Virus record (IMG/VR): IMGVR_UViG_3300028392_000029
Coordinates: 159,177-223,176 of that record
Direction: 5' to 3' (one strand)
DNA: 64,000 nt
In this document: positions 1-57,608 of the stretch, in pieces
Position numbering within the stretch: position 1 is the stretch's first letter
Layout of the letters: the number at the start of each line of letters is the position of its first letter
The notes under the pieces: generated by a model
Database searches by the model: none
What the model was told of the DNA's origin: nothing
The model's input: only the letters and a program-made list of their open reading frames with translations
Program-made: the position numbers and the translations under genes

Positions 1-395
1 TTATTGCCAACCAGTCGACCTAGAAAGTCTTGAGGATCATATGATCCAGCATGCCACAGGCCATGTGTAACTACTGGAATATTCAATAGCTCACTCATGT
101 ACTTTAAGTTGATGATGCCAGGGTGCCAAGCGTCAGTAAACAAAAAATGATCCCCAGGCTTAACTGCTCCGGAGCAAAATAAACGACCCATCTGCTCAAC
201 TTGACTAGCTTTATATATGTTAGTTCCACCAAAATTGAGAAAAGCGCCAGGGGTGGTAGCAGTCGGAATATCTGTAGGTCCGGAAATAATTTGAACATTG
301 TGTCCTGCCTTTTTAAGTAACGCAGGTACATGAGTCTTCCATTGACCCGTGTACCTTGTCTCAACTGATTCTAAGTCGACTAAGAATACGTTCAT
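1..395 (-). CDS. Glycosyltransferase (GT-B fold, GT4-like), N-terminal part; runs off the window edge
   Basis: Not in the ORF track because it is truncated. ATG at 395 overlaps the upstream TAA. Translates MNVFLVDLESVETRYTGQW...GDHFLFTDAWHPG...GLWHAGSYDPQDFLGRL, which resembles phage glycosyltransferases found beside deazaguanine genes. Confidence 0.6.
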   Translation of the reverse strand, partial: MNVFLVDLESVETRYTGQWKTHVPALLKKAGHNVQIISGPTDIPTATTPGAFLNFGGTNIYKASQVEQMGRLFCSGAVKPGDHFLFTDAWHPGIINLKYMSELLNIPVVTHGLWHAGSYDPQDFLGRLVGN

Positions 396-646
396 TATTC
401 TACAGTAGCATACTTTGGATTTTTGCCCTGATATGGCTTGCGCTCACGAGAGCTGTCCAGACGTTTAGGTCTACGTGATTTTTCAAAGTTTCGCCATGCC
501 CAACTTTCTCTGTTATAAAGATGGGACTCATCAAACGGAAACATTTCCAACCGACAGAAATTGTGATATGCTTCTAGATCATCAAAGATCTTAACAACAT
601 CAGGACGGTTTTCGAAGTAAGCGTAGTCTTTGTAATTTTTAGCCAT
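395..646 (-). CDS. Hypothetical protein (83 aa, MAKNYKDY...)
   Basis: Start moved from 754 to ATG 646, which has AAGGAAAG upstream and avoids overlap with the 666..1055 gene. Confidence 0.7.
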   Translation of the reverse strand: MAKNYKDYAYFENRPDVVKIFDDLEAYHNFCRLEMFPFDESHLYNRESWAWRNFEKSRRPKRLDSSRERKPYQGKNPKYATVE

Positions 647-665
647 GATAGCTTTCCTTGTATTT

Positions 666-1055
666 TTAATACTTAATAAATGAACCATTTTCTCCGTCTT
701 CGGAGACCTCAATCCAAACCTCACGGCCTGGATACTTGCTGGAAATAGTATCAAACAAATCGCCTGACATCATCTCGCAACTCTTGTAGTCTAGTTGGAG
801 TGTACCCTCTGCGTACAATTTTTCCAACCAGCGTTTAAACTGAATAAACTCAATATCGCGATCATCGTGGGTGACACTAATCCACACTTTGAAGTGGAAT
901 GTGTGGCGATGCGGATAGCCTAGAAAACTTACATCATATTCATCACCTGTAGCAAGTGCTGTATCTGTAAGTGCGGCTGGATATTTGTGAATACCTTCTT
1001 TCTGAAAGGTAACCCAAATCATTTTGTTAGGACGAATGTCTTGTTTAATAATCAT
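666..1055 (-). CDS. QueD/PTPS-like T-fold protein
   Basis: GIHKYP...HRHTFHFKV...DIEFIQFK...SCEM...EVSEDGENG: three-His Zn pattern and T-fold glutamates; lies in the dpdA cluster. Confidence 0.65.
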   Translation of the reverse strand: MIIKQDIRPNKMIWVTFQKEGIHKYPAALTDTALATGDEYDVSFLGYPHRHTFHFKVWISVTHDDRDIEFIQFKRWLEKLYAEGTLQLDYKSCEMMSGDLFDTISSKYPGREVWIEVSEDGENGSFIKY

Positions 1056-1627
1056 ACAGTTTCTTCAAAGAGTGAGGTATAAGTTGATATAGCCATGTTT
1101 TCAAGTGTTTTCATATCTTCATCACTTAGTCTAAAAGAATAAGATTTAGACTTCGGTAAATGCACTTGTTCAAAATATCCGTAGAAACCTTCATAAGGTG
1201 TATACCCGATATTTTCATTCATTGTAATCAATGTTTTAGCATTGTTATATGCTTTTTCTATCAGTGCTTGAATGTGCGGAGCAGAAAAATCGTAAACTCT
1301 TGCTTCGATAATCACTCCGCCTTTAATTTTAATTCTTAACTGTTGTTGAAACTTTTTCCATACATGGGAATTCTTGTAGTCATTATTAATAATGTCTTCA
1401 GCATGCATATCTGCAATAGTTTGCGCACTAGTTGCATCAACATCTCGAGTTTTTACTTCAAGACCGTATACTAATATGTCTGCGCCATGACCTCGATTAA
1501 TAGGAACACCCATAGATTCAAGTAATGCTTCGACGGCTCTACCTGCATATCCGCCAGCACTTGCTGGTACTTTTTTGCCAATTAGTTGATCAGCAATTTT
1601 AAATACTTTTACTTTTGCCTTTATCAT
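1052..1627 (-). CDS. MutH/Sau3AI-like PD-(D/E)XK endonuclease
   Basis: GGYAGRAVEALLE...GADILVYGLEVKT matches the MutH/Sau3AI G-x2-G-x3-E...(P/A)D-x6-E-x-K core. Confidence 0.65.
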   Translation of the reverse strand: MIKAKVKVFKIADQLIGKKVPASAGGYAGRAVEALLESMGVPINRGHGADILVYGLEVKTRDVDATSAQTIADMHAEDIINNDYKNSHVWKKFQQQLRIKIKGGVIIEARVYDFSAPHIQALIEKAYNNAKTLITMNENIGYTPYEGFYGYFEQVHLPKSKSYSFRLSDEDMKTLENMAISTYTSLFEETV

Positions 1628-2148
1628 TTGATAACTTCATCGTTTTTATATTGAGACCAGTCTGTAAACTTACTTCTATCCATTAGCGTATGTAGACTGT
1701 GGGACCATACACCGGGATTAGTTGCCTTAAAATCTTTGTCATCTATTTTAAGCATTGTATTATAATTCCACAATTTAATGTAAGGAATTGGCACTCTTAT
1801 TTGCGGAATAAAGTTGTTGTAGTCATTCAATCCACCGTCATTAAACTCTTCTACAGCACTTAATGGAATATCTAGACTGCATATATAACCTTCTCCTAGG
1901 AAGTATTCAATCATTTCTTCCCATTTTTTCCAACCAGCATAGTCGTTGAATACTGGATTAAAACTGTGATTTGCACCAAAGAAAATATGCTCGCAATCAT
2001 TGTTCACTGCATGAAATGCAATTTGATCAATTTGTTGAATACCTGTAACAAACAAAGTTTTTAATCCGTATGCAGGAGTATGTTCAATTTCTGTGCCAAC
2101 AAAAAATGTCACTTGCTCGCTTACACCAGTTGTATAATCACGTTTCAT
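1624..2148 (-). CDS. Conserved phage hypothetical protein in the deazaguanine cluster
   Basis: 174-aa ORF overlapping both neighbours (FFVGTEIEHTPAYG...KIDDKDFKATNPGVW). Confidence 0.75.
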   Translation of the reverse strand: MKRDYTTGVSEQVTFFVGTEIEHTPAYGLKTLFVTGIQQIDQIAFHAVNNDCEHIFFGANHSFNPVFNDYAGWKKWEEMIEYFLGEGYICSLDIPLSAVEEFNDGGLNDYNNFIPQIRVPIPYIKLWNYNTMLKIDDKDFKATNPGVWSHSLHTLMDRSKFTDWSQYKNDEVIK

Positions 2149-2389
2149 TCTTTTCTGCCTTCGATCGTTCGTACACTTTAAACATTCTAGTTACATCTTC
2201 TATACGTTCAGCAAAATGCTCAGGAGCACCTCGAGCCGCCGCTTTCATATCATATTCTTCGGGATAGTGTCTTAAACAAGCTCGAGCACCGTCTTTGATT
2301 GCTTTTGGAACTCGAGGAGTAGTCAGGATCTCTAATAGAAATCTTTTAGTTTGTACTACTGCTCGATATCTTTCATCTGGTAACGTCAT
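2138..2389 (-). CDS. Hypothetical protein (83 aa), probably leaderless
   Basis: ATG lies 6 nt after a TATAAT -10 box. Confidence 0.7.
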   Translation of the reverse strand: MTLPDERYRAVVQTKRFLLEILTTPRVPKAIKDGARACLRHYPEEYDMKAAARGAPEHFAERIEDVTRMFKVYERSKAEKNET

Positions 2390-2395
2390 ATTTGT

Positions 2396-2423
2396 ATTAT
2401 ACAGTGATTGTAACTAAAATCAA
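2396..2423 (-). promoter_or_regulatory. sigma70-type promoter (TTGATT-N16-TATAAT), leaderless transcript
   Basis: Minus strand TTGATTttagttacaatcactgTATAATacaaatATG. Confidence 0.55.
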
Positions 2424-3640
2424 TCGTTTTGGCCAAGTTCGTCAAATATGAACGGCGAACCTTTAAAATAATTATATCCAAAAAACTCATCCATAATAGA
2501 TAAACTATGTGCTGAAAACAATATTGGGGGACCGTTTGCAGGTAATCCCATATCATATGCACGTTGGTTATAGGCCATTAGTTTTCTAAACTCGATATCT
2601 CCAGCTAGATTATCTTTTGAGTTTTGACTAGCTTGCCGCCAAAATTCTGTATCAAAATTACTACCACCGTGATAGATATAGTTAATAATACGTTCTAAAG
2701 TCTGTGCTAATCTAACTTGTTCAGCGTTGGCTTCTTCTTGATTCATTTGACCTGTAACATACTTAAAAATAATACCACATACGTTTGTATAGTGGTTAAT
2801 CGATGTTGCACTAATTGGTTCAAAGAATATAGCACGATTGCCGTTCTTGATAACTCTGTTATCAACTAATTTAGTAGTATAATAGGGTTTGAATTTATAC
2901 TCTTTAGTATCTAATTCGTCTATAGTTATTTTTAGCATTTCAGCCATGTCAGCTTTTGCATCTTCAACAGTAGTGATTGTGTCGTTAAACAAATAACCAT
3001 ATGTTTTTCTACTAGTTAACGGAATTCCAAACATCCATCCATTCTTGGTAGCAAAGTGTTCTGTGTACTGAATAGGATCAAATCTTTCAAAGCTATGTAC
3101 TAGACATCTGTTTAGAATACTGCAAGTACTCATATGATAGTCTTCAGAGTAGTCTGTAGGGAAACCTCTGCAATCTATAACATAATCAAATTCTTCATTG
3201 GTTCCATTTATTTCTACAATAGCTTTATCAGAATTATTAATAACATTAGTTACTGTGCCTTCAATTATGGAAAACTTTTGCGGCCAGCATAGAGCTAATC
3301 TTTCAAATACAAATTCTTTTAATTTAAAATTATTAAAATGTACAGCTACCCCGCCCTGTAGCAATGGGTTCAACCATTCCCACTTACGCCAGTTAATATA
3401 CTTTGTTCCAAATTTAAGTGTGCTATCTAATTTTGGAGTATCTTCAAGAGTTGTAAATCGTGTACCTTTTTCCAGTAAGCCAATAAATCCAGGATTAGTA
3501 CTTTCGCCAATTCCTAAAATAGGAATAGCTGGGTCATACAGTGAAACAATGTCCCATTCATTAGTAAGTGTTGAGCAAAGGTGCGACAATGTTAGCACCC
3601 CAGCACTACCTACTCCTAGTACACCAATACGTTTCTTCAT
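2420..3640 (-). CDS. Flavin-dependent tryptophan halogenase-family protein
   Basis: GVGSAG FAD motif, IGESTNP, DCRGF, GWMFGIPL, FFEPISATS. Confidence 0.8.
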   Translation of the reverse strand: MKKRIGVLGVGSAGVLTLSHLCSTLTNEWDIVSLYDPAIPILGIGESTNPGFIGLLEKGTRFTTLEDTPKLDSTLKFGTKYINWRKWEWLNPLLQGGVAVHFNNFKLKEFVFERLALCWPQKFSIIEGTVTNVINNSDKAIVEINGTNEEFDYVIDCRGFPTDYSEDYHMSTCSILNRCLVHSFERFDPIQYTEHFATKNGWMFGIPLTSRKTYGYLFNDTITTVEDAKADMAEMLKITIDELDTKEYKFKPYYTTKLVDNRVIKNGNRAIFFEPISATSINHYTNVCGIIFKYVTGQMNQEEANAEQVRLAQTLERIINYIYHGGSNFDTEFWRQASQNSKDNLAGDIEFRKLMAYNQRAYDMGLPANGPPILFSAHSLSIMDEFFGYNYFKGSPFIFDELGQND

Positions 3641-5262
3641 TTAACTTCTCCCTCTAGCTCGTCTAGTTTAGACATTTGATCTTCAGAAAACTCTCCATCT
3701 TCTACTTCAATCTCTGCTGTGCTTGTTCCTACTTCTTCAAACAAATTAGTAAACATTGATTGTGAGTTTAGTGTTTTCTTACCTGTAGCACCTCGAGTTC
3801 CAATAATACTCATCCAGAATCTGCTGTATTCTTCTACCACAGCATCTGCGGTGCCCCGGTCACTAGTTGCAAAGATAGCTTCGATTACATCTTTAAAATA
3901 TAATCTATCAAACTTTTCTTGTACTAGCATATTAGGACAACTGCCTAAATCATATTGTCGATTAGCTTCTTGTACTGCGTTCACATGCATCCAAACATTA
4001 TGACCCATCATAACAGCATAGGTAAAACTATCCCAACTTGTTCTATTACTGACTTTACCTAGTTTGTTAACGTCCGGCATTACTGTCCAGTGTGCGGGAT
4101 TATACGGATCTAGGATTGTTCCGGGTGGAACATTTGGATTTGGAGTACCAGCGTTGTAGATACAAATTTCATTCATAAGAACACCGTCCATAATTGGACT
4201 AGTTGTAAACTTAGGAAATATTTTATCCTGTATTACTGCGTCTTGGAAGAGTCTAGTATCTGTTGCGTATTTCTTGTCGTCAGCAGAAGCCTGCATACGG
4301 TAGACCCATTTTGTCCTATCGTCTGTTTCGACATTAGTATAGATTTGTCCGTTTGCTGTTGCAAGGAATGGACTTGCGCAGTCAAAAGAGATGGTAAAGT
4401 TTTCATTATGGTATTTCCTAACAGCACGTTGAATATCGGTTAAAAGAACTGCCCACTCTAACTTAGAGGTGCCTAGGAAGTGCATCCAATCATGTTGACC
4501 CTTTTCAAGGAGCCCATCGAATCGTAATGCCACTAATCTCTTTAGTACAAGGTGGATGTCACACATATTCTGCCCACCCATACCCCAACCGTTAAATGCA
4601 CGATCGCCGTATTGCGAGCGATCACAGTAACGTTTCATTCGTTGATACCAATCTTCGGCATCTGTATGCGTTTCACCTTGTAGTACGTTTAAGAACTTAC
4701 AGTTACCATTGCGATTATTAACAAAGTAATCGTTATTGATATATGTGCCTTGCACAGCCTCTGCATATGAACTAATGCCAGTTGCCGCAACACCTGCTGG
4801 ACTACGAGCAACCCAAGCTGGGATATCAAGACCCATGCCGTAGTCCATTAGTGTGTCCATCCAAGTAAGAACTTGCTGTCGCTTCTTCATAGCTTTAGGA
4901 CAGTTAGGATCTTTCCAGTCGGCTGGCCAAACACCTTTACCAATCTGGAATCCGCCTGAGTCACCTAATACCCAACTAGTACTACGATTACGATTTCGGA
5001 ACATGTCCTCGCTTTCATCTTGTTTATTCAAATCAAGATTAGCATGGCCTGCCGAATATAAACAGTGGTCATAATAAAATGCACCTTTATCTGGATCAAG
5101 ATAGTTAAGACTTTCAACACCGTTTTTAAAACTTTTAGGAATACGTGTAGGATCTACGTAATTGCTATAGCGTTGTTTTCCGATAAAGGTGCTATAAAAG
5201 CCGCTAGTTGCTGGCAAGAATACAGCATAGTCGTTTTGTGTTGCGGTAAGATTTCTATTCAT
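3637..5262 (-). CDS. dpdA: tRNA-guanine transglycosylase-like DNA 7-deazaguanine inserting enzyme (DpdA family)
   Basis: TGT motifs DSGGFQ, LDIP, FLNVLQG, GWGMGG, HFLGTS, SFDCASP; next to queD-like and replication genes. Confidence 0.8.
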   Translation of the reverse strand: MNRNLTATQNDYAVFLPATSGFYSTFIGKQRYSNYVDPTRIPKSFKNGVESLNYLDPDKGAFYYDHCLYSAGHANLDLNKQDESEDMFRNRNRSTSWVLGDSGGFQIGKGVWPADWKDPNCPKAMKKRQQVLTWMDTLMDYGMGLDIPAWVARSPAGVAATGISSYAEAVQGTYINNDYFVNNRNGNCKFLNVLQGETHTDAEDWYQRMKRYCDRSQYGDRAFNGWGMGGQNMCDIHLVLKRLVALRFDGLLEKGQHDWMHFLGTSKLEWAVLLTDIQRAVRKYHNENFTISFDCASPFLATANGQIYTNVETDDRTKWVYRMQASADDKKYATDTRLFQDAVIQDKIFPKFTTSPIMDGVLMNEICIYNAGTPNPNVPPGTILDPYNPAHWTVMPDVNKLGKVSNRTSWDSFTYAVMMGHNVWMHVNAVQEANRQYDLGSCPNMLVQEKFDRLYFKDVIEAIFATSDRGTADAVVEEYSRFWMSIIGTRGATGKKTLNSQSMFTNLFEEVGTSTAEIEVEDGEFSEDQMSKLDELEGEVK

Positions 5263-5613
5263 TTAGATCCAATGTTGTACTAGAACCATAAGACTTAACC
5301 AAGCCCACATGGTATTGAAACCGACTAGCGTTGGTAATGACTTTTTACGACTAGCCCAAATAAGTGTTACACTAGTTAACAAGGTTAGGTAGTATAATTG
5401 CCAGATTTGAATTCCAAAGATTAAACCTGGAATGATAATGATTGCCTTGGCCAGCCAACTGACAAATTCTACAGTATTGTAGCCAGTCCAATATTCTTTT
5501 GTAAACCACATCATATAGCAGTCACGCATATTTGCCCAACCGCTATGTGAGTAGCAAATTACCATTAACACTAGCCATACACCTACAGCTAATAAAATTT
5601 GATCAGTAGTCAT
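5263..5613 (-). CDS. Small multi-pass membrane protein
   Basis: 116 aa with about four hydrophobic segments; abuts both neighbours. Confidence 0.7.
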   Translation of the reverse strand: MTTDQILLAVGVWLVLMVICYSHSGWANMRDCYMMWFTKEYWTGYNTVEFVSWLAKAIIIIPGLIFGIQIWQLYYLTLLTSVTLIWASRKKSLPTLVGFNTMWAWLSLMVLVQHWI

Positions 5614-6344
5614 TATTTGCTTAGTGCAGGTAAAATATAATTGTATTCAGCAACACCGCTGTCTACAGTAATTTGCATGGCACCTGAGTCCGAAATCTTC
5701 ATAGTCAAATCTCCTGGCAATGCTAAAATACTTTGTACTTGTTGTACAGGCCATGACAATGTCTGACGCATTTTTCCAGTAATTCCAGATTGGAAAGTAA
5801 ATGATCCAGCATGTGTGCTTGCATCGCCGAAACTAAACACTAGATCGCTGCCGTCAGTTTTAACTTGGAAACTAGATTCTTCAGTATGAGCTGCCGCCTG
5901 GTATTTTAATTTTTGGATCGATGCGACTGTAGGTTGTACTTCGACATCCCAGCTAACACCTTTGAATTTGACGGTTTTAAGTTTTTCATTAATAACTTCG
6001 TTATTCATAAAACGATAATCGTTTTCAAAGTCACCGGTCGCATTTTGAAAATGCAAGCCTGTTGGAACTTCTTCACCGTTACGTTGTTGTTTAACAACTT
6101 TAATACCGGCGCCTTCTTTGTACTCCGGGCATTTCAAATGCAAATCTAATTTATTAAGTTGTGGCATTCCAAACACACCTTCGAAATTATCAACTGGGTT
6201 ATGTGTTTTTGCACTGAAAATAACTGAACGGTCTTCAGCCATTGATTCAATTGCGGTTTCTTTGTCGCTGGCACTTACTTTAACTAAAGGCAGGAAGCCC
6301 AGGTTGTGTGTATGTGCTACTAGGTCTTGTAAAAAGTCTTTCAT
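5613..6344 (-). CDS. Sliding clamp (gp45/PCNA-like)
   Basis: About 243 aa with a beta-rich two-domain pattern and C-terminal YNYILPA; close to polB; a clamp loader is also present. Start set at MKDFLQ, which has a GGAG SD. Confidence 0.6.
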   Translation of the reverse strand: MKDFLQDLVAHTHNLGFLPLVKVSASDKETAIESMAEDRSVIFSAKTHNPVDNFEGVFGMPQLNKLDLHLKCPEYKEGAGIKVVKQQRNGEEVPTGLHFQNATGDFENDYRFMNNEVINEKLKTVKFKGVSWDVEVQPTVASIQKLKYQAAAHTEESSFQVKTDGSDLVFSFGDASTHAGSFTFQSGITGKMRQTLSWPVQQVQSILALPGDLTMKISDSGAMQITVDSGVAEYNYILPALSK

Positions 6345-6364
6345 ATGATTCTCCATGTTTAATG

Positions 6365-6393
6365 ATTATACTTAGGTTTTTTGACTATGTCAA
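6365..6393 (-). promoter_or_regulatory. sigma70 consensus promoter for the clamp-dpdA operon
   Basis: TTGACA-tagtcaaaaaacctaag(17)-TATAAT. Confidence 0.85.
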
Positions 6394-6396
6394 TGT

Positions 6397-7170
6397 TTAT
6401 TTTCTTATTTTGTTGTTGTATTTCACCACTTCTTCTACAACGGTTACAGGGGTATTTAGGTTTTTTGCATAATGTATGAAAGCATTTGTGTCTTTAGGAA
6501 AACACGCTCCGCCAAACCCAAACAATCCATCGGATCCAGGCACGTTCATATGGCTTAATCCAATTCTAGTATCTGCAGAGACTAACTGTTTGACTAATTC
6601 ATAGTCTGCACCGTTGGCCTGACATACTTCATAAATTTGATTAAAAAACGCTACCTTTGTACTTAAAAAACTATTAATTGAATATTTGATCATACTAGCT
6701 TCCGTAATACTACACGGGAGAAAGAATTCGCATTTTTTAAGAACAGATGAAAATAAGTTTTCCCAGAAACTATTGAAATCTTCTCCGCCGATAATCATAT
6801 ATTCTTGATTTAAGAAATCTTCATCAGCAGTTGCCGCACGTAGAAATTCTGGACTATAACAAATATGATGATTAGGATAATCGACTAATATTTGAGATAG
6901 CTGATCCGGGGGTATAGTTGACTTAATTAAAACTGGTAAATTATCCGGCGTATTTTCTAATACTGATCGTATCTGTGTGTCGTCACAACTACCGTTGGGC
7001 AAACTTGGTGTACCTACACATATGATAACACCTTCTCCTGTTTTGTAATCAGATACACTACTAGTGTTGATCTTTGGATCAACAATGTGAATAGTATGCT
7101 CAGCCGCCAATGCTAGACCAACCGCCTTACCTACAAATCCATAACCTGCAATTATAATTTCTTTTTTCAT
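6397..7170 (-). CDS. ugd: UDP-glucose/GDP-mannose dehydrogenase family (short form, C-terminal domain absent)
   Basis: GYGFVG Rossmann motif, ICVGTP, KSTIPP, SPEFLR, GFGGACFPKD with catalytic Cys; start set at MKKEII (7170). Confidence 0.85.
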   Translation of the reverse strand: MKKEIIIAGYGFVGKAVGLALAAEHTIHIVDPKINTSSVSDYKTGEGVIICVGTPSLPNGSCDDTQIRSVLENTPDNLPVLIKSTIPPDQLSQILVDYPNHHICYSPEFLRAATADEDFLNQEYMIIGGEDFNSFWENLFSSVLKKCEFFLPCSITEASMIKYSINSFLSTKVAFFNQIYEVCQANGADYELVKQLVSADTRIGLSHMNVPGSDGLFGFGGACFPKDTNAFIHYAKNLNTPVTVVEEVVKYNNKIRK

Positions 7171-7171
7171 A

Positions 7172-9841
7172 TTAGAACTCAAATAAACTGTTAAATGTGT
7201 TTTTTTCTTCTGTACTACGGACATCCCATTTAAGTACACCGATAAGATTTTCTAGTTTTTTATCTATAATGGCTTGTTCCATTTCAGTATGGTTAAAAGG
7301 CAAATCCTTAAACCATTGCGGCAATCTGAGCTCATCTACTGGATAAGCTACGCTTGTGAATCCCAAAGGATTGTCTTTAAGTTTGCAGACGATAACTTTT
7401 GCACCATCTGTAATAGCCATGCTATATTTGTCATCAAACATACGTTTAAGTGTGTTCCAATTAATGCTTGCACGAACATGCCCGGGCATATTAGCCTTAC
7501 CAGCCTTTACTTCCTTAGCCTGATATTCTGTAATGTTATTGGCACGTTTAGGACTACCTTTCTCCCAACCGGGACGAACTTTAAAACGTGTTCGGAATTC
7601 AGTGATGTGGGCTAGTACAGTATTTTCGTCAGCACCGGTTAGCACCAACTCAAGAACATCACTTAAAAAGTTTTGAATAAACTCAGGTGTATCACTACGC
7701 TTGAGATCCAGCCCCATGGCTTTGATCTTGCCAGGCTTGCCATCTACGTCTGCACGTTTGCCTTCTTTGTCATAATACAACACTGCATAGCGTTTCTTAG
7801 TAATAAACAGACCTTTAATTGCAACAATCTCACGACCAGCTTTGATAACTTCACCGCGTGACTTTGGCACATGGAATGTATCTAACATGAACTGTGGAAA
7901 GGTAGTATTAACTTCTTCACCAATCTGGTCATATAGCTGAACAACACTTTCTTTAGTCCAGGGAATAACTTTTGAATTGATATCTTTTTGCAGAGTTTTA
8001 TAAGCACTAAAATAGCACGAGTCTGTATCACCGTAAATAATAGCCTTGCCCCTGTAGTCATACTCGCCGGCCACAATCTCATTGACCTTGCCAGCCATGT
8101 GCTTGACAATTTGTCTGCCTGTCAGTGTGGTTGACTGCCCGATACGCTTGTCAAAGAATCTACAGCCACTATTAAGAATAGCACCATACAAACTGTTCAA
8201 GTTAATCTTCTTGACCAACTGACGTTTGTCCCAATATTCTTCTTCAATCTTGTTGCCTGCCTTGATAGCATCTTTTAGTTTGGCCTGCATCTCCTTACGT
8301 TCGGCATACCAACGTTTGAGCAAGCCGGGGATAATGCCTTCTGTTTCGTGTGTAAAGATAGTACCATTAGCACTTAACATCCACGGCTGATTGCTTTCAA
8401 ATATAAGTCTATAGACTTCCGCGGCACTGAGCACATCACTATCACCGTTTTGCCAATCAATAGTAATGTCTGTGCCAATTTGTTGTTCCATTACGGCTGT
8501 ATATTCTAGTGATCCGAAGATACCTTCCCATGCCGCCGCAAATGATTTACCTTTTCCAATTTGCGCTTCAATATAATCGTCAGTTAATGTCTGACGTAAT
8601 TGTCCAACAATAGTTTCCGGACCCATATTCAATGCACGAATGGCTGATGGGTAAAGACTATTAATATCTAGGGAACCAATCCAATCATGAATACCTTCTT
8701 TAGGGACAGCGACATACGCACCTGCGGCTCCTTCATTATCTTCTCGATCATCCATCTTAGTTCGATTGGGTACTTGGAATCCTCTTCGATGGGCTTCGTT
8801 GATAATTGCTTGCTCAGTTACAGCTACCGCACCCATTGTGGTCTGTAGCAACACAGTACACTCATGTGCCAGTGTGTTGGCAAGATCCATAAACTTTAGT
8901 TTCTTGTCTAGATCGTCAAGCAGTTTACAGTCGTTACGGTTGTACTCAATGAACGTTTTAAAGTCATTGTTGTATAATTGGTCGAGCGTACCTTCATATT
9001 GTGTTTTACGTTGACCTAGTTCATATTCCGCGATGGCGTCAAGTCTATAACTGTGGCGTTCTTCATACGTATACTTACGGTACAGCTCAAGATAGTCTAA
9101 GTGAACGCGACCAATGTAGTCATAGGTTACACTATCACGACCAAACTTTTCATATTCTCTGCGTTTAGGAAATTGGTCAAATAAACAAAAACGTCGGGTA
9201 TCTTCTTTGCTTAGTGCTTTAGTAACACGATTAGTTGTGTAGGGAATATCAAAACCTTCACTATTCCACCCACTTAGTACATCAGCATCTTTAATCAAAT
9301 CAAGAAAAACATCTAGCATTTCTGCTTCTGTTTTATAAAGCATTGTGTTAGGGAAGTCTTTAACTTGCTCTAACGCTTCTTCCATGGTAATAGTCTTTGG
9401 AGGAACTGCTAGACATACCATGGTTTCCATCCACTGTAGGTAGACAGCAATCGCAGTAATTGGCATGAACGCATCGTCTGGACTTGCATAGCCACGCTCT
9501 GGATCAAAGTCTACCTCAATATCGAAAAACGCTACGTTTAGTTTAGGAGCATCTTGATTAATGTAGTTTTCGCTTAGGCAAACAAAGATGGGATTAATAT
9601 CTGCTTCAAATAATTGCTTACCTGAATTAATTGCTTGTTCTTTGCGTAGTTCTTTTGTATTTTTACAGATAACCCTGTTAAGTGGGTCGCCGTAGATTGA
9701 TTGATATTTGCCCTTGGGGTCTTTGTAGTAAAACGTGTGTTTGACAGGTATGTCACGGAACTCACGCTCACCTTTCTTATTGCGTTCGACAACTTTAATA
9801 ACATCGTTATTACGGTCAAACCATGCATCTACATAGCTCAT
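7172..9841 (-). CDS. polB: Family B DNA polymerase (T4 gp43-like)
   Basis: ExoI DIEV, ExoII WNSEGFD, ExoIII YNRND; DINSLYPS, KINLNSLYG, YGDTDS, KKRY. Confidence 0.97.
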   Translation of the reverse strand: MSYVDAWFDRNNDVIKVVERNKKGEREFRDIPVKHTFYYKDPKGKYQSIYGDPLNRVICKNTKELRKEQAINSGKQLFEADINPIFVCLSENYINQDAPKLNVAFFDIEVDFDPERGYASPDDAFMPITAIAVYLQWMETMVCLAVPPKTITMEEALEQVKDFPNTMLYKTEAEMLDVFLDLIKDADVLSGWNSEGFDIPYTTNRVTKALSKEDTRRFCLFDQFPKRREYEKFGRDSVTYDYIGRVHLDYLELYRKYTYEERHSYRLDAIAEYELGQRKTQYEGTLDQLYNNDFKTFIEYNRNDCKLLDDLDKKLKFMDLANTLAHECTVLLQTTMGAVAVTEQAIINEAHRRGFQVPNRTKMDDREDNEGAAGAYVAVPKEGIHDWIGSLDINSLYPSAIRALNMGPETIVGQLRQTLTDDYIEAQIGKGKSFAAAWEGIFGSLEYTAVMEQQIGTDITIDWQNGDSDVLSAAEVYRLIFESNQPWMLSANGTIFTHETEGIIPGLLKRWYAERKEMQAKLKDAIKAGNKIEEEYWDKRQLVKKINLNSLYGAILNSGCRFFDKRIGQSTTLTGRQIVKHMAGKVNEIVAGEYDYRGKAIIYGDTDSCYFSAYKTLQKDINSKVIPWTKESVVQLYDQIGEEVNTTFPQFMLDTFHVPKSRGEVIKAGREIVAIKGLFITKKRYAVLYYDKEGKRADVDGKPGKIKAMGLDLKRSDTPEFIQNFLSDVLELVLTGADENTVLAHITEFRTRFKVRPGWEKGSPKRANNITEYQAKEVKAGKANMPGHVRASINWNTLKRMFDDKYSMAITDGAKVIVCKLKDNPLGFTSVAYPVDELRLPQWFKDLPFNHTEMEQAIIDKKLENLIGVLKWDVRSTEEKNTFNSLFEF

Positions 9842-39115: not shown

Positions 39116-41863
39116 TTAGCTAATGCTTACTCTGTGTATAGTCAGTCTACAGCCGCTGGCAAGATCGATATTTGCTCCGCTAGCATTCCTTAAAACAAAA
39201 CAATGAATGGTGTCCCCGGCGGTGGCTTGAACCACAGTTGAATAGTGTAGATATCGCCCCGACCATGCATCCTGCATGATTGTGACTGTTTTAGCACCGT
39301 CACTGCTGTCTATGAGGAAAAAGCTACCTGAGTTTAATGTCACTGATGTTGAGAAATATATTGACACATTGAATTGATAGTATCCTGTATATGGTGCTGT
39401 GAATACACCATTGGCGTATGCATTAGCAGTGTCCACTGTTTCAGTAAACAGAATGTAGGCGGCACTTGCTTGATCTATGATTGTTCTTGTAGTTGATGTT
39501 TGGGCAATCACTGTGACAGGTTTGTAACTGGCAATAACACTGGCATCTGGTAATGTTATCTGGCCACTACTTCCAAAAATATAATTGTTACCGCCCACTT
39601 GTAGTGTAATGGCATTTGATAAAGTATTTGACAGCGTGTCTCCACTGAACGCAAAATTACCCAAACTTGGTGCGGATCCGTAGGTAACTTCTTTAGTTGT
39701 GGTGTTGTAATATAACACATTGGATGTTGCTGTGGCAGTTCTAATTGGTGCCACATAGAAACTGTTGGGTTGTTCGGCAACACTATTGACTATAACACCG
39801 CTGGCATTTAATATGATGGTGTTGGCCGCTTGGTTGTTGTCTCCCGCCCTATAACCGATTGCTATGGCATTGGCACCTTGGCCGCCTAGGCCGGCTTGCT
39901 TACCAATGGCCACGCTGTTTACACCTTGTAAGTTATACCCAGCACCAAAGCCCACAGCCACTGCACCTTGACCTTGCACGGATATTCCAGCCAAGGCACC
40001 AATGGCCACTGTTTCAGTTCCTTGGTCACTATTACCCGCTTGTGTGCCAATGGCCACTGCATTGGCACCTTGTGAGGTTGTTCCGGCATCTTCACCAAAT
40101 ACCACACTATTACCCGCAGTGTCTTTTATCACTGCACCGTTGGGCAATGTCAATGCACCATCCGTGCCAAATGTAAAATTATGTGGAACTGTGCTTGAGG
40201 TTGAAAAAGATACACTACGGATACCCGTATTGTTAGGCAGTGTGCCGTCTACTCTACCACTCACACGCTGCCAGGTTGGATGTGCTGGATCGTATTGTCC
40301 TTGAGTTGTGAACGCCTGTGTTATGGTGCCAGTAAACAAATTAGGCTGGCCACCGGATGTTTCATACACCACACCCATACCCGTGCCCAGAGCCAGTCCA
40401 GTCACATAGGTCACAAACGCAGGGGTTCCGAACAGGGCAAACTCAATCTGTGACGGATTGCGTTGATACCATCCCTGTATAAATGTGCCGTTTACTGTTA
40501 TGTCTCTTGAGAAGGCTTGCGCATTGTTATAGGTCGGACTGGTGGTAACCACTGTTTCCTGAGTGGTAACTGCAAGCGCAGTGTCTACCGCAGATTTAAT
40601 GGTGTTGCTGGGAAATGTCAATACACCAGTTGAAGCAAGACTCAATGTGCTGCCACCGTTGACCAAACTACTCACACTGCCAGTCCAGGCTGTGGTCTGT
40701 ACAGAAGCGTCTGGGAATGTTAAGCTACCATCTGTGCCAAGACTCCACTGTTTAACACCACCAGAAGTTTGTGTTTCAATTTGCAACACTTTGTTAAGAT
40801 CAGCGGTTATAGTAGAGTAAGGCGTGCCATTTTTCCGAAAGGTGAGTCCTGACGGCAATGTTAAGACGCCACTAGAACTAAGGCTCACAGTTTGTGTGCT
40901 GTTGACTAATGTGCTTACACTGCCAAGCCAGGCTGTGGTTTGTACCGTGGCATTGGGGAATGTTAAATTACCATTCTTGCCAAAGGTCCAGATACTGTTT
41001 GTTGCCCCAGGCTTATAAAAACTCCAAGATGAAACGCCAAAAGTATCGCTAGCACCTGTGAAGTCGTCAGTACTTAAAGTTATACGCCATTCCCCAATAT
41101 TAGCGTCAGGAGCAGCCACAGCAGTTATTTGCATTACACATGTTCTACTAATCACATAGTCACCAACAGCGACTACGGTTGCCCAATTGGGTGCTGAAGA
41201 AATTGAGAACACTAGGGTAAAAAAATCACTGTAAAGAGCACTAAGGTTAGATAGGTAATAAGCGCCAGTTTGTATTTTTATATCCAATGCTGATTTTATT
41301 TTTGACCCAACTCCAGCCATGATATCAAAATTTGGCAATGTTACTGTGCCATCCGAGCCAAGGCTCACTGTGCGAGCACCGTTGACTAATGTGCTTACAC
41401 TGCCACTGCTGGCAGTAACAACGCCACTGCCATCTATACTTAGGCCAGTGCCAATTTTGATACCACCCAATATGGATGCGGATGCTGTGGGCAATGTGTA
41501 AGCACTGGGTATGGTGGGCTTGTTGGTCAAGTCTGTATATGAACCACTGAACAATGTGGGTTTGTTCAGTATAACTCCTAATCCACTAGATGCAGTCCAG
41601 TTGCTTTGTACCTGTGCCGCCGCCCCAGTTAGTAATATTTTGTTATTGGCATCATCATAGGTCACCGTGATGTTGGTGTGACTGGCATGTGTGAACAAGG
41701 GTGCCGCATAGTCCTGTGCCAGTTCAATCAAAGCCGCACTTGAACCGCCAGTTAAGGCATACAGTTCTGTGAAGTTTGCATTTACTTTTATAAACGCATT
41801 ACGAAGTGTATCACCGCTTTTGTCGTTGGCACTAGCACCAACTAGGATATTTTGTTTAGACAT
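39116..41863 (-). CDS. Tail fibre/receptor-binding protein with YadA-like head repeats and a C-terminal C1q-like domain
   Basis: ANDKSGDTLRNAF N-terminus; repeated AVAIG; GVFTAPYTGYYQF. Confidence 0.8.
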   Translation of the reverse strand: MSKQNILVGASANDKSGDTLRNAFIKVNANFTELYALTGGSSAALIELAQDYAAPLFTHASHTNITVTYDDANNKILLTGAAAQVQSNWTASSGLGVILNKPTLFSGSYTDLTNKPTIPSAYTLPTASASILGGIKIGTGLSIDGSGVVTASSGSVSTLVNGARTVSLGSDGTVTLPNFDIMAGVGSKIKSALDIKIQTGAYYLSNLSALYSDFFTLVFSISSAPNWATVVAVGDYVISRTCVMQITAVAAPDANIGEWRITLSTDDFTGASDTFGVSSWSFYKPGATNSIWTFGKNGNLTFPNATVQTTAWLGSVSTLVNSTQTVSLSSSGVLTLPSGLTFRKNGTPYSTITADLNKVLQIETQTSGGVKQWSLGTDGSLTFPDASVQTTAWTGSVSSLVNGGSTLSLASTGVLTFPSNTIKSAVDTALAVTTQETVVTTSPTYNNAQAFSRDITVNGTFIQGWYQRNPSQIEFALFGTPAFVTYVTGLALGTGMGVVYETSGGQPNLFTGTITQAFTTQGQYDPAHPTWQRVSGRVDGTLPNNTGIRSVSFSTSSTVPHNFTFGTDGALTLPNGAVIKDTAGNSVVFGEDAGTTSQGANAVAIGTQAGNSDQGTETVAIGALAGISVQGQGAVAVGFGAGYNLQGVNSVAIGKQAGLGGQGANAIAIGYRAGDNNQAANTIILNASGVIVNSVAEQPNSFYVAPIRTATATSNVLYYNTTTKEVTYGSAPSLGNFAFSGDTLSNTLSNAITLQVGGNNYIFGSSGQITLPDASVIASYKPVTVIAQTSTTRTIIDQASAAYILFTETVDTANAYANGVFTAPYTGYYQFNVSIYFSTSVTLNSGSFFLIDSSDGAKTVTIMQDAWSGRYLHYSTVVQATAGDTIHCFVLRNASGANIDLASGCRLTIHRVSIS
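40901..41405. repeat. 25-bp identical direct repeat, 480 bp apart, inside the tail fibre gene
   Basis: gttgactaatgtgcttacactgcca at 40901-40925 and 41381-41405; a third diverged copy near 40660. Confidence 0.9.
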
Positions 41864-54056: not shown

Positions 54057-54344
54057 ATGTATATTGGAACTGAATTTCGAGAAAACCACTATGTGCGCAC
54101 CAGCAATCGTGGTAAGACACACACCTATAGTCGTAAAAAAACCGTACTGGTATTACGGTGTGATTGCTGTGGAGAAGTATTTAATCGAGACAAGGGCAAT
54201 ATGGACCCTAATCGATTAAGCAACAACTATTATCATGTGTGTGGTAATTGTGATGCTAAAAAGTTTGCTCAAAGCAAAGGGATTGAAAGTAAGCATGTTT
54301 GGGACATGCCTGTAAGCAGTCTTAAGACGCTAGGCCAACTCTAG
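54057..54344 (+). CDS. Small Zn-ribbon protein
   Basis: CDCC...HVCGNC; leaderless after TAAATA. Confidence 0.7.
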   Translation: MYIGTEFRENHYVRTSNRGKTHTYSRKKTVLVLRCDCCGEVFNRDKGNMDPNRLSNNYYHVCGNCDAKKFAQSKGIESKHVWDMPVSSLKTLGQL

Positions 54345-54882
54345 CACTGATTACATTCCAGTTGATAATTTTCCACTGATTAGATAGATAGCTTTTTTTA
54401 TCGGCTTGGTAGTCTAGAGCCCAGGCATGCTCCCACCAATCTACCAGCAATACAATATCCTGTCTGATTTCGTGATTTTTGATAGTCTTAATTTTTCCGT
54501 CACGAGCCAAATACACCCATCCTGAACCTTGGATTTTCATAGCTTCTTTTTCAAAGGCATCAATAAACTTATCAAAATTTTTAAAGTGTTTATCGATAAA
54601 TTCACCGGACGACCCGCTAGGCTCGTTTGATCTTGTAGGTTTCTGAAATTGCGTAAAGTATATATTATGCAAAAAAGCCCCAGCTTCGTTGAAGTCAGGA
54701 TCCCCTTCTCCTTTATTAAAACGCTTAACATATCCGCCGTACAGTTCACTATAGTGATAGTCTATGGTTTCTTCACTCATGCTGGGTTCTAAATCATCTC
54801 TTGCATAGGGCAACTTGGTATGAACCAACGTCTTGGGGGTTTTACCCTCGTTCAGCGTGATGTGTTTAATAAAGTTGTACAT
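54322..54882 (-). CDS. sod: Fe/Mn superoxide dismutase
   Basis: LPY...LEP, YHY, LHNIYF, GSGW, DWWEHAW (His, His, Asp, His metal ligands). Confidence 0.9.
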   Translation of the reverse strand: MYNFIKHITLNEGKTPKTLVHTKLPYARDDLEPSMSEETIDYHYSELYGGYVKRFNKGEGDPDFNEAGAFLHNIYFTQFQKPTRSNEPSGSSGEFIDKHFKNFDKFIDAFEKEAMKIQGSGWVYLARDGKIKTIKNHEIRQDIVLLVDWWEHAWALDYQADKKSYLSNQWKIINWNVISARVGLAS

Positions 54883-54924: not shown

Positions 54925-55188
54925 ATGTTAAAATTTATCAAAAGTTTTTTTAAGAAATCAGATCCAGTAGTGGCAGAGCCAGTTCCATATAAAGTCGAAG
55001 TTGCTCCGGTAGCAGAACTAGCACCAGTTGCTGTTCAAGCTGTAGAAGCAATGGTAGAGTCTATTATGCCAGCTGGGACAGAAGCATCAATGGCCGCACC
55101 TGTTACTAAATCTAAGAAAGCACCTGCGGCTAAGAAAGCACCAGCCGCAAAAAAGCCACGTGCTCCTAAAAAGCCTAAAGCAGAGTAA
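54925..55188 (+). CDS. Small protein with an amphipathic N-terminus and a histone-like KKAPAA tail
   Basis: GGAGG SD; MLKFIKSFF...KKAPAAKKAPAAKKPR. Confidence 0.75.
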   Translation: MLKFIKSFFKKSDPVVAEPVPYKVEVAPVAELAPVAVQAVEAMVESIMPAGTEASMAAPVTKSKKAPAAKKAPAAKKPRAPKKPKAE

Positions 55189-56200: not shown

Positions 56201-56370
56201 TACCAATGCCTTATGACGCTTGCGATTATAAAAATGTTTGTAAGTACATATGATAACACAATTACAGCACGAATGCAAGCAATTCGATCCGATTCCTCGT
56301 CCGTACTGCCTGATTTTTCACCTAATGATTTTGCCCAAAGTCGCCAAAAATTACGGAAGTAAGTTCCCAT
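56200..56370 (-). CDS. Small membrane protein (56 aa; missed by the ORF track)
   Basis: MGTYFRNFWRLWAKSLGEKSG...IRAVIVLSYVLTNIFIIASVIRHW*; TAATG coupling to uvsE. Confidence 0.7.
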   Translation of the reverse strand: MGTYFRNFWRLWAKSLGEKSGSTDEESDRIACIRAVIVLSYVLTNIFIIASVIRHW

Positions 56371-57148: not shown

Positions 57149-57158
57149 AATTTTATTT

Positions 57159-57608
57159 TTAGCCTTCGTATGTAGCCGAGTTAGCACCATGTTCTGCACA
57201 TTCTACCCTTACACAATAGCAACGATTATTAGTCTTTTCTCTTATTAATTGATCAGCAAAATTAAAAGCATGTTCAGCAAACTTCTCTGCACCTACGCCA
57301 TCAAAGATGCGAATCTCTGCTAGACCTAACATTTCCAATTCTAAAAACTTTGACAAATATGGATCACTTTTATCCAATGCTAGTTTGTGATCAAAGTGAT
57401 CTTCCAGCCATGCCTTGAGCAACTTAAGACCGCCAAAGTCTACTGCCCAGTTTTTATTGTCTAATGTTTCACAACCAAAGGTAAACGTAAATGCTAGACT
57501 ATAACCATGTAGCAAATGACAGTGACTGTGATCTGCGTTTGGTTGACGGAATACAGCACTTAGTCCAATGTTGTGTCCATAGTGTTTTGTTGAGTAAAAT
57601 TTTGCCAT
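57159..57608 (-). CDS. queD: 6-carboxy-5,6,7,8-tetrahydropterin synthase
   Basis: HCHLLHGYS, WAVDFGGLK, FDHKL, GAEKFAE, VECAEHGANSA. Confidence 0.88.
   Translation of the reverse strand: MAKFYSTKHYGHNIGLSAVFRQPNADHSHCHLLHGYSLAFTFTFGCETLDNKNWAVDFGGLKLLKAWLEDHFDHKLALDKSDPYLSKFLELEMLGLAEIRIFDGVGAEKFAEHAFNFADQLIREKTNNRCYCVRVECAEHGANSATYEG

Follow-up and report, generated by a model that had tools for sequence, protein, structure and literature searches.

The analyzed window of 64,000 nucleotides corresponds to positions 159,177 to 223,176 of the IMG/VR record IMGVR_UViG_3300028392_000029, a 223-kb contig of an uncultured jumbo phage. Its first 7170 nucleotides form the right end of a co-oriented block of minus-strand genes, in which a divergent DpdA-like transglycosylase, a paralog of QueD, a GT-B glycosyltransferase (GT) and a UGDH-like gene lie between DNA polymerase B, the sliding clamp and FEN. 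The left flank of the window holds FolE, QueE, a purine phosphoribosyltransferase (PRTase) and a HIT protein, while a genuine QueD is encoded far from the cluster. An earlier note, made from the sequence alone, had described a dpdA-like, a queD-like, a glycosyltransferase and a ugd-family gene among replication genes, and this observation is confirmed. Two open reading frames which might have been taken for dpdA or queD are neither: one is the sliding clamp, and the other encodes a small membrane protein.

Features of the modification cluster and its context. Counts of related loci refer to 80 close relatives from IMG/VR.
Position	Strand	Length	Assignment	Supporting observations
1..395	-	131 of 365 aa	N-terminal part of a GT4-type GT-B glycosyltransferase; the ORF continues 702 bases left of the window (G000:C1:158474-159571 of the full contig = L002:13298-14395)	79-97% identity in the 80 loci
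395..754	-		Small conserved ORF of unknown function; about 85 aa in relatives, so the likely start is the ATG at about 646	73 of 80 loci, ORF lengths mostly 80-90 aa; no family hit
666..1055	-	129 aa	DpdL-type QueD paralog (T-fold), predicted 7-carboxy-7-deazaguanine decarboxylase	phrog_17812 at 7e-32
1052..1627	-	191 aa	Accessory protein with weak MutH/Sau3AI-like nuclease similarity	Pfam MutH E 0.006, below cut-off; only 8 of 80 loci
1624..2148	-	174 aa	Conserved protein of unknown function (p174) that travels with the GT in some lineages	74 of 80 loci; no Pfam, PHROG or PDB profile hit
2138..2389	-	83 aa	ORF of unknown function	48 of 80 loci; no family hit
2420..3640	-	406 aa	Accessory short flavin-dependent halogenase-like protein	Pfam Trp_halogenase 4e-30; phrog_2928 2e-71; only 4 of 80 loci
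3637..5262	-	541 aa	Divergent DpdA/TGT-superfamily transglycosylase, predicted to swap guanine in DNA for the deazaguanine base	No Pfam or NCBIfam hit; 954 clusters at 50% identity in the family
5263..5613	-	116 aa	Hydrophobic (membrane) protein, variable among relatives	Largely hydrophobic translation; 18 of 80 loci; no family hit
5613..6356	-		Sliding clamp (replication), not part of the modification pathway	phrog_12062; homologs next to polB annotated PCNA or sliding clamp in PAC2 and Phosso
6397..7170	-	257 aa	Short UGDH-like NAD-dependent dehydrogenase; ATG one base after the polB stop	Pfam PF00984 2.6e-23 and PF03721 1e-10
7172..9841	-		Family B DNA polymerase	Pfam DNA_pol_B 1e-37; 49% identity to Phosso, 45% to Atu_ph07
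57159..57608	-		QueD/PTPS (6-carboxytetrahydropterin synthase type)	PF01242 52 bits, over cut-off; TIGR03367 3e-8; Cys-x3-His-Gly motif

Although the DpdA-like protein escapes the family models, its assignment rests on several lines of evidence. The sequence carries the motif DSGGFQ; its AlphaFold2 model (pLDDT 90) finds its best Foldseek matches in the tRNA-guanine transglycosylase (TGT) of Z. mobilis (E 6e-7, prob 1.0); and the residues D101, S102, G104, H261, G264 and D294 are invariant in 81 diverse relatives. In a profile alignment D101 and D146 correspond to Asp102 and Asp156 of TGT, and D294 sits in an FDC motif like Asp280-Cys281 of TGT. A profile HMM (A1) hits DpdA of phage ACP17 at 3e-10 and DpdA3 of Cellulophaga phage phiST at 2.5e-4. 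The stop codon of this gene overlaps the ATG of the halogenase-like gene (ATGA), as read directly from the sequence. Aligned to PrnA, the halogenase-like protein keeps GxGxxG and Lys79, but WxWxIP reads WMFGIP and Glu346 is Ser.

The queD-like gene of the cluster is a paralog and not QueD itself: its motif L-GYP-HRH-T-F equals the published DpdL signature LxxxHRHxF. Sequence identity is 70% to Phosso, 56% to the PA5oct-like phages and ACP17, and 30% to CGPG_00067 of phiST, and an HMM hits the phiST DpdL at 3.6e-15.

For the GT, the predicted structure (AlphaFold2, pLDDT 89) matches retaining GT-B enzymes of family GT4 in Foldseek, i.e. glycogen synthase, BshA, MshA and PimA, at 1e-10 to 1e-8; the best match in BFVD is the GT of ACP17 with a TM score of 0.83-0.88. 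Both glutamates of the EX7E motif (E273 and E281) are invariant.

The UGDH-like protein shares with UDP-glucose 6-dehydrogenase the NAD-binding Rossmann domain, the central helical domain and the catalytic-Cys motif GGxCxxKD (here GGACFPKD). However, it aligns only to residues 77-303 of a 446-aa UGDH, its score of 146 bits for TIGR03026 lies below the cut-off of 190, and the C-terminal UDP-binding domain (PF03720) is missing here and from the whole contig. The ORFs of 59 relatives are all 256-307 aa long, apart from one fragment of 134 aa. The protein is therefore unlikely to make UDP-glucuronate in the canonical way, and the suggestion of the note that the attached sugar could be a uronic acid is weak.

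The note had named the left flank as a place to look for folE, queE, queC and queF. FolE and QueE were found, whereas QueC, QueF and canonical TGT are absent from the contig, which is, however, only about 60% complete. DpdL is present, and this is the gene set of the dDG (2'-deoxy-7-deazaguanine) pathway of phiST, which comprises FolE, QueD, QueE, DpdL and DpdA3 (Hutinet et al. 2023, PMC10516641), and not that of the preQ0/preQ1 pathway. The note had named preQ0/preQ1-type bases, but the base is not of this type. Both systems lack QueC and QueF, both lie next to the DNA polymerase, and both possess a transglycosylase of the TGT superfamily too divergent for the Pfam TGT model. In contrast, phiST has no GT, no p174, no UGDH-like gene and no PRTase, and its DpdA3, with 259 aa, is only distantly related. 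The DNA of phiST is fully dDG. The decarboxylase activity of DpdL has never been shown; the heterologous test failed. The final base in the phage studied here is not known.

That the GT might prove unlinked to dpdA in relatives had been put forward as grounds for discarding the idea of a glycosylated base; the comparison of gene neighborhoods does not bear this out. The GT family lies beside DpdA and/or DpdL in at least nine separate phage lineages. It does so in the PA5oct-like phages, Phosso, ACP17, BUDD/X1, BCSR5, the metagenomic lineages that we label L091-L094, L099, L101 and L103, and the 80 close relatives. The gene order is QueD-FolE-p174-DpdA-GT-DpdL-QueE in ACP17, GT-TGT-DpdL-QueE in BUDD, DpdA-like-GT-DpdL...PRTase-QueE in PAC2/PA5oct, and DpdL-p174-GT-DpdA-like in L103, and in several of these lineages the GT and DpdA genes overlap at stop and start. 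In L099, a distant relative, genes for GDP-mannose synthesis, a phosphomannomutase and a mannose-1-phosphate guanylyltransferase-like (ManC-like) gene, are interleaved with DpdL, DpdA-like and GT, and L101 has a second GT. On the other hand, two lineages of the same DpdA-like family, L105 and L106, lack the GT in the sequence available, and, as the cluster lies inside the replication block, some of the proximity could be inherited order rather than function. The interpretation of the note is thus partly supported: glycosylation is well supported by gene context, while the type of base and the role of Ugd are not supported as written.

Among cultured phages, the Pseudomonas jumbo phage PA5oct (Wroclawvirus) possesses homologs of the DpdA-like protein (36%), GT (44%), DpdL (56%), PRTase, QueE, clamp and polB in the same order, but no UGDH-like, halogenase-like or p174 homolog was found in its cluster. 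Its DNA resists five G-containing restriction enzymes and is attacked by nucleases that sense hypermodified DNA; the structure of its modified G has not been determined, and the published analysis named only QueE and PTPS, not the DpdA-like, DpdL or GT genes. The glucosylation of 5-hydroxymethylcytosine of the T4 type and glycosylated 5-hydroxycytosine (PMC13326640) offer a precedent for phage GT-B enzymes that add a sugar to an already non-canonical base, with the gene in a replication-linked block. The GT-B glycosyltransferase of phage HY126 (9ir0) is among the structural matches, though similarity to those enzymes is no better than to generic GT4 enzymes; moreover, the acceptor here would be a purine analogue with no known hydroxyl handle, and no dCMP/dUMP hydroxymethylase-type gene, i.e. 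no competing acceptor, was found in the contig. A chemical precedent is HuiG of huimycin biosynthesis, a GT4-type enzyme encoded beside FolE, QueD and QueE, which uses a nucleotide sugar to glycosylate a free 7-deazaguanine-type base. HuiG, whose sequence was not compared with the GT, belongs to an actinomycete secondary-metabolite cluster that lacks DpdA, and its substrate is an O-methylated preQ0 derivative.

We favor, with moderate confidence, the model of a 7-deazaguanine DNA-modification module of the phiST type which is extended by a dedicated glycosyltransferase. According to this model, FolE, QueD and QueE turn GTP into 7-carboxy-7-deazaguanine (CDG); DpdL removes or alters the carboxyl group to give 7-deazaguanine or a close derivative; the DpdA-like transglycosylase exchanges guanine in replicated phage DNA for that base; and the xanthine/guanine-type PRTase probably salvages the released guanine. 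The GT would then add a sugar from a host nucleotide sugar to the deazaguanine-derived base, most likely after insertion into DNA, or alternatively on the free base before insertion. The UGDH-like dehydrogenase may oxidize that sugar once it is attached, which would explain why it needs no UDP-binding domain. What our analysis establishes are the identities of the genes, their folds and catalytic motifs, and the conservation of their neighborhood; each chemical step, the acceptor atom, the nature of the sugar and the action of the GT on DNA are inferred, since no chemistry was measured and no mass-spectrometric data exist for any GT-bearing phage. As 7-deazaguanine has no hydroxyl group, candidate acceptors are the exocyclic N2, a ring carbon, or a different 7-substituent.

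For the last step of this model, it is about equally likely that the UGDH-like gene is a general auxiliary metabolic gene of T4-like aquatic phages, unrelated to the DNA modification. Homologs occur in cyanophages, a pelagiphage and Microbacterium phages; the gene is absent from the clusters of PA5oct, Phosso, ACP17 and L099; and in most relatives it sits between polB and the clamp (39 loci) and not next to the GT. Short UGDH-like and halogenase-like genes of cyanophages and pelagiphages were not seen next to deazaguanine genes, although only one such context (C48C1) was inspected. Yet in 14 related loci the gene lies directly between GT and FolE, and in 6 between HIT and FolE; the same short form follows the QueE-like radical-SAM gene in Campylobacter phage CP220, whose DNA is dADG; and the loss of the UDP-binding domain is stable across the 59 relatives.

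A less likely alternative is that the DNA carries plain 7-deazaguanine, and that the GT acts on the host envelope, a phage protein or another metabolite and merely shares an early-gene block with the pathway. In favor of this view, phiST reaches 100% dDG without a GT, which is hence not needed for base synthesis or insertion; GT4 enzymes usually act on sugars, lipids, thiols or proteins; dDG offers no obvious acceptor; and the more distant GT relatives in the PhiXhv and Ep phages sit in a GlmS/BshB-like sugar context with no deazaguanine genes. However, the GT sits between, or overlaps, DpdA and DpdL genes in lineages whose polymerases are only 26-28% identical to the one studied here, 17 of 22 phage records with a GT hit also have DpdL, and across the clade the GT is more conserved than the polymerase (58-90%).

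Two further readings are improbable. The base could enter DNA at the nucleotide level, with the PRTase making 7-deaza-GMP, as TubE or ToyH do in deazapurine antibiotic pathways, the polymerase incorporating the deoxynucleotide, and the DpdA-like protein playing a minor or different role: a purine PRTase is conserved in 50 of 80 relatives, in PAC2, next to a DpdA-like gene in a further contig, and in L091, and a HIT-family nucleotide hydrolase/transferase lies beside it, but the catalytic residues of the DpdA-like protein are invariant, the PRTase is missing from ACP17, BUDD, L099 and L103 in the regions seen, and salvage of guanine explains it equally well. That the GT makes a soluble glycoside of a pterin or free deazapurine that never enters DNA, resembling tetrahydrobiopterin glucoside or huimycin, is suggested by pterin synthesis through FolE and a PTPS-type QueD, by tetrahydrobiopterin glucosyltransferases among the structural matches (5zer, 9v0l) and by HuiG, but those matches rank no better than generic GT4 enzymes, the cluster always contains a DNA-type transglycosylase and lies among replication genes, and PA5oct DNA itself is modified at G.

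The replacement of guanine by 7-deazaguanine is already known from phiST; what differs here is the glycosyltransferase embedded in this gene set in many unrelated phages. The modified base therefore probably also carries a sugar, although this is chemically unproven, and such a modification has not been reported for a purine in DNA. The expected product would be phage DNA resistant to restriction and other nucleases.

The window forms the last 64 kb of a 223,176-bp IMG/VR virus contig, which CheckV estimates to be about 60% complete. Its family B DNA polymerase is 49% identical to that of the Sinorhizobium jumbo phage Phosso, and 44-45% identical to those of Atu_ph07 and the Rak2-like coliphages. 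At the nucleotide level, however, a megablast of positions 1-8000 against the deposited phage records gave no match. Hundreds of close relatives occur in IMG/VR and in metagenomes, including the uncultured freshwater phage record UFOVP181. All genes in the first 12 kb lie on the minus strand, and no alternative genetic code was needed. The polB gene is intact in this window, whereas in relatives it is split by a homing-endonuclease gene (phage PAC2 and the metagenomic lineage L101) or carries an intein (the lineage L105).

Coordinates of the features discussed in the text (window numbering unless a contig or locus is given; G000:C1, the 223-kb contig; L002, the extract of its left flank; the other L numbers, loci of relatives)
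Feature	Position	Strand	Description
GT	1-395	-	start of a 365-aa ORF that runs into the left flank
DpdL	666-1055	-	queD-like gene of the earlier note
MutH/Sau3AI-like	1052-1627	-	191 aa
Halogenase-like	2420-3640	-	short flavin-dependent halogenase-like gene
DpdA-like	3637-5262	-	541 aa
Membrane protein	5263-5613	-	hydrophobic
Sliding clamp	5613-6356	-	
UGDH-like	6397-7170	-	starts one base after the polB stop
Long ORF	41863-53667	-	single open reading frame of 3,934 codons in the structural region
Fe/Mn superoxide dismutase	54322-54882	-	next to the isolated queD gene
UvdE UV-endonuclease	55175-56278	-	next to the isolated queD gene
Methyltransferase-like ORF (weak)	56351-57199	-	next to the isolated queD gene
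QueD	57159-57608		
HIT-family protein	G000:C1:155838-156215 (L002:10662-11039)		between the GT and FolE
PRTase	G000:C1:156587-157078 (L002:11411-11902)		xanthine/guanine type, between the GT and FolE
Fe-S-assembly-like protein	G000:C1:157075-157368 (L002:11899-12192)		small, between the GT and FolE
Cupin	G000:C1:157698-158168 (L002:12522-12992)		156 aa, just downstream of the GT
polB of PAC2	L005:1-5215		split by a homing-endonuclease gene
DpdA-like of PAC2	L005:6379-8001 (PA5oct 222988-224283)		annotated 'hypothetical protein'
QueE-like, membrane protein and UGDH-like of Campylobacter phage CP220	L088:6931-8765		CPT_0017 to CPT_0019
Sugar-nucleotide genes with DpdL, DpdA-like and GT	L099:7843-12326		distant relative
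polB of L101	L101:3750-7942		split by a homing-endonuclease gene
polB of L105	L105:2934-6384		carries an intein

The earlier note had described a dpdA-like gene, a queD-like gene, a glycosyltransferase (GT) and a ugd-family gene at this end of the window, and all four proved to be real. Pfam, PHROGs and NCBIfam left both the DpdA-like protein and the GT without assignment, and single-sequence phmmer searches against PDB gave nothing useful for the 247-aa, 365-aa and 541-aa proteins. For this reason the DpdA-like protein was taken into a word-index search and an exhaustive search of representative sequences. Two neighboring ORFs were considered and rejected as the source of these names: the candidate for dpdA at 5613-6356 is the sliding clamp, and the candidate for queD at 5263-5613 is a hydrophobic membrane protein.

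The DpdA-like protein contains the motif DSGGFQ. No match to Pfam PF01702 was obtained in the contig at E<=1, and only 2 of 81 relatives reach E 0.04. We aligned the protein with 80 diverse representatives (25-55% identity) taken from the 954 clusters found by the exhaustive search. In this alignment D101, S102, G104, H261, G264 and D294 are invariant, and D146 is at least 90% conserved. The profile places D101 and D146 onto the region of Asp102 and Asp156 of Zymomonas mobilis tRNA-guanine transglycosylase (TGT), while D294 lies in an FDC motif like TGT Asp280-Cys281; Asp102, Asp156 and Asp280 are the catalytic and substrate aspartates of TGT, and this numbering is supported by the mutant names among the matched structures. 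The AlphaFold2 model (pLDDT 90) has the TGT-type TIM-barrel fold: Foldseek returned at least 178 PDB matches at E<=0.001, the top 50 listed are all TGT, and the best reaches 6e-7 with probability 1.0 and a TM-score (target) of 0.55. The zinc-binding CxCxxC...H subdomain of canonical TGT was not found, as the 81-sequence alignment has no invariant or nearly invariant cysteine. Pairwise BLASTP against the DpdA proteins of ACP17 and BUDD was not significant; only the profile search connected them, and among reference ORFs the family HMM picks out solely the ACP17 DpdA, the phiST DpdA3, the BUDD transglycosylase and their kin. Exchange of guanine in DNA for a 7-deazaguanine base was not assayed. 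In the PA5oct group (PAC2) the homolog of this protein and likewise the DpdL homolog are annotated as hypothetical proteins.

The queD-like gene is not QueD, but a DpdL-type paralog, which carries the published signature LxxxHRHxF (here L-GYP-H-R-H-T-F) in place of the QueD motif CxxxHGH. It is homologous to phiST CGPG_00067 and to ACP17 DpdL, with 30% and 56% identity in tblastn and E-values of 3.6e-15 and 1.6e-47 with the HMM. It co-occurs with FolE, QueD, QueE and a DpdA in the absence of QueC; the real QueD is 50 kb away. Decarboxylation of CDG, the activity predicted for DpdL, has not been demonstrated for any member, and a literature search on the bare name DpdL returned mostly unrelated acronyms.

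The model of the GT (pLDDT 89) has a GT-B fold, with two Rossmann-like domains, that is closest to retaining GT4 enzymes. There are 476 PDB matches at E<=0.001, the top ones being glycogen synthase, BshA, MshA and PimA. E273 and E281 of the EX7E motif in the C-terminal domain are invariant in 30 sequences down to 25% identity. The match to Pfam PF00534 stays below the gathering score (10.8 bits against a cut-off of 26.4), and the direct scan gave no hit, although PF00534 is carried by 29% of the members of one related Atlas cluster. The sugar donor and acceptor were not determined biochemically, nor was the family placed in a rooted tree with cellular GT4 enzymes. A complex prediction for the DpdA-like protein and the GT scored 0.00 and returned no verdict, which is not evidence either way.

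The ugd-family gene possesses the NAD-binding and central domains of UDP-glucose 6-dehydrogenase (PF03721 and PF00984), including GYGFVG and the catalytic-Cys motif GGACFPKD (GGxCxxKD), but it ends exactly where the UDP-binding domain should begin: its alignment stops at residue 303 of a 446-aa UGDH, and the C-terminal UDP-sugar-binding domain (PF03720) is absent from the contig. It scores 146 bits with TIGR03026 against a cut-off of 189.8, and about 100 with the equivalog models against 670-757. The ORFs of the 59 relatives are all 256-307 aa apart from one 134-aa fragment, so that this is a stable short form and not a broken gene.

The left flank had been named in the earlier note as a place to look for folE, queE, queC and queF, and inspection of this region revealed the first two. 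In order beyond the GT lie two ORFs of unknown function and a cupin, a small Fe-S-assembly-like protein, a xanthine/guanine-type phosphoribosyltransferase (PRTase), a HIT protein, FolE, QueE, an accessory 2OG-Fe(II) oxygenase and FEN/RNase H. The cupin matches the PHROG 'cysteine dioxygenase' (6e-34) and is conserved in 65 of 80 relatives, but it was not found in the PA5oct, ACP17 or L099 clusters. The PRTase recurs in PAC2, in the metagenomic lineage L091 and in a 2.9-kb contig, next to a DpdA-like gene; it could serve guanine salvage or a nucleotide-level deazapurine route. QueC (PF06508), QueF (PF14489) and canonical TGT have no match in the 223 kb, with the reservation that the contig is incomplete. 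[quoted passage not shown]

A GT unlinked to dpdA in relatives would, by the earlier note's own criterion, have spoken against its reading; we examined this point, and as far as gene context can show, the GT is part of the pathway. Among cultured phages, ACP17 has the order QueD-FolE-p174-DpdA-GT-DpdL-QueE (p174 being a 174-aa protein), with overlapping DpdA and GT genes. In BUDD and BCSR5 the GT directly precedes the transglycosylase, with DpdL and QueE after it, and in PA5oct-like phages the DpdA-like gene and the GT share a base at stop and start and are followed by DpdL, a PRTase and QueE. Phosso has DpdL-GT-x-FolE...QueE. For p174 itself, a feature search of the Atlas gave only sub-threshold leads (0.82, DUF4434/glycosyl-hydrolase-like), and its profile found nothing in PDB. 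Metagenomic lineages of the same DpdA-like family, at 33-40% identity, show DpdL-p174-GT-DpdA-like (L103), or DpdA-like-DpdL-GT followed by FolE and a second GT of 476 aa with PF00534 (L101). In L099 a nucleotidyltransferase, a phosphomannomutase and a ManC-like mannose-1-phosphate guanylyltransferase/isomerase are interleaved with DpdL, DpdA-like and GT. Among 80 close relatives, the GT (79-97% identity) is more conserved than the polymerase (58-90%). Searches for related loci seeded with the ACP17 GT and the BUDD GT gave 1 and 4 loci, respectively. Of the 22 deposited phage records with a GT hit, 17 also have DpdL, and the other five are weaker hits in a GlmS/BshB-type sugar context. The GT is not universal, since phiST and some other DpdL phages lack it, and two DpdA-like lineages show in its place a methyltransferase (L105, a Methyltransf_24 gene directly after the DpdA-like gene) or nothing (L106); a census of all of the approximately 950 DpdA-like clusters for neighboring GT, DpdL, methyltransferase and sugar-nucleotide genes was not made. 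This pattern is what one expects of an optional tailoring step, and the tailoring genes differ from lineage to lineage.

For PA5oct, a modified G in GA/GG contexts has been inferred experimentally, and nucleases sensing hypermodified DNA were shown to restrict the phage. The authors noted only QueE and a PTPS gene, without naming a transglycosylase, and the chemical identity of the base was not determined. We found no paper reporting a glycosylated 7-deazaguanine in phage DNA in the literature searched. GT4-type glycosylation of a free 7-deazapurine base is known from huimycin biosynthesis (HuiG), and phage GT-B enzymes that glycosylate DNA bases are known for pyrimidines.

According to the mechanism we consider most likely, FolE, QueD and QueE would convert GTP to CDG, DpdL would convert CDG to 7-deazaguanine or a near derivative, the DpdA-like enzyme would exchange this base into DNA after replication, the PRTase would recycle the released guanine, and the GT would add a sugar from a host nucleotide sugar. 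The contig was found to encode no nucleotide-sugar synthesis of its own, that is, no NTP_transferase, Epimerase or UGDH C-terminal domain. While gene context supports the place of the GT in the pathway strongly, its action on the base is inferred, and we regard glycosylation of the deazaguanine-derived base as somewhat more likely than not. The acceptor atom is unknown, because 7-deazaguanine has no hydroxyl; possibilities are the exocyclic N2, as in huimycin, a ring carbon, or a 7-substituent different from H, if DpdL is not a plain decarboxylase. An oxygenase such as the cupin could create a hydroxyl acceptor for the GT. A T4-like hmC route was rejected because no dCMP/dUMP hydroxymethylase of the thymidylate-synthase fold (PF00303) is present at E<=1 in the 223 kb available.

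For the UGDH-like gene, there is evidence both for and against a link to the pathway. It keeps to the cluster while changing position, lying between polB and the clamp in 39 loci, between GT and FolE in 14, and between HIT and FolE in 6. Furthermore, the same short form, of 256 aa, follows a QueE-like radical-SAM gene and a small membrane protein in Campylobacter phage CP220, whose DNA is fully dADG; the window shows the same trio of gene types (short UGDH-like, small membrane protein, deazaguanine genes). On the other hand, it is missing from the PA5oct, Phosso, ACP17 and L099 clusters, and homologs occur in cyanophages, a pelagiphage and Microbacterium phages. Because the UDP-binding domain is lacking, canonical synthesis of UDP-glucuronate, as presumed in the earlier note, is unlikely. 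If the gene belongs to the pathway, the most economical idea is an oxidation of the sugar after transfer, but this is inference only. The evidence does not rule out that in this clade the attached hexose is oxidized in place to a uronic acid by a UGDH-like enzyme that has shed its UDP-binding domain because its substrate is the sugar already on the base. In this view, which we consider improbable, the same chemistry without the oxidation step would be the unidentified modified G of PA5oct, and it might also explain why DpdL plus DpdA alone failed to give dDG in E. coli.

Two accessory genes lie within the cluster. The halogenase-like gene is translationally coupled (ATGA overlap) to the DpdA-like gene; it keeps the PrnA Lys79 equivalent and the FAD motifs, but WxWxIP reads WMFGIP and Glu346 is Ser. 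Only 4 of 80 relatives have it, and two of those carry a different 513-aa flavoprotein at nearly the same spot; its relatives are mostly in T4-like cyanophages, a pelagiphage and Campylobacter phages. The pyrrole ring of 7-deazaguanine is electron-rich, so a base-directed halogenation or oxidation is conceivable, which is pure speculation. The MutH/Sau3AI-like protein, whose similarity is weak (E 0.006), is present in only 8 of 80 relatives, and could be a mobile nuclease or a nuclease that spares G-modified phage DNA.

Taken together, the observation made in the earlier note holds. Its interpretation is supported in part: the link of the GT to the deazaguanine genes is strong, the base has to be corrected from the preQ0/preQ1 type to the dDG type, and the uronic-acid part is weak. 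The gene set as such is already known from phiST; what is added is the GT, together with a large, unannotated DpdA subfamily, comprising 954 clusters at 50% identity and more than 7,700 at 90%, which is common in environmental jumbo phages. The analysis also names the missing transglycosylase, DpdL and GT of PA5oct, and its prediction is concrete and testable, since PA5oct, ACP17 and Phosso are cultured. To our knowledge, every glycosylated DNA base is a pyrimidine (glucosyl-hmC, base J, arabinosyl-hmC, glycosylated 5-hydroxycytosine), and a glycosylated 7-deazaguanine in virion DNA would be the first sugar-bearing purine analogue in any natural DNA. It would extend hypermodification chemistry to purines, and would give studies of defence and counter-defence (restriction, END nucleases, CRISPR) a new type of substrate.
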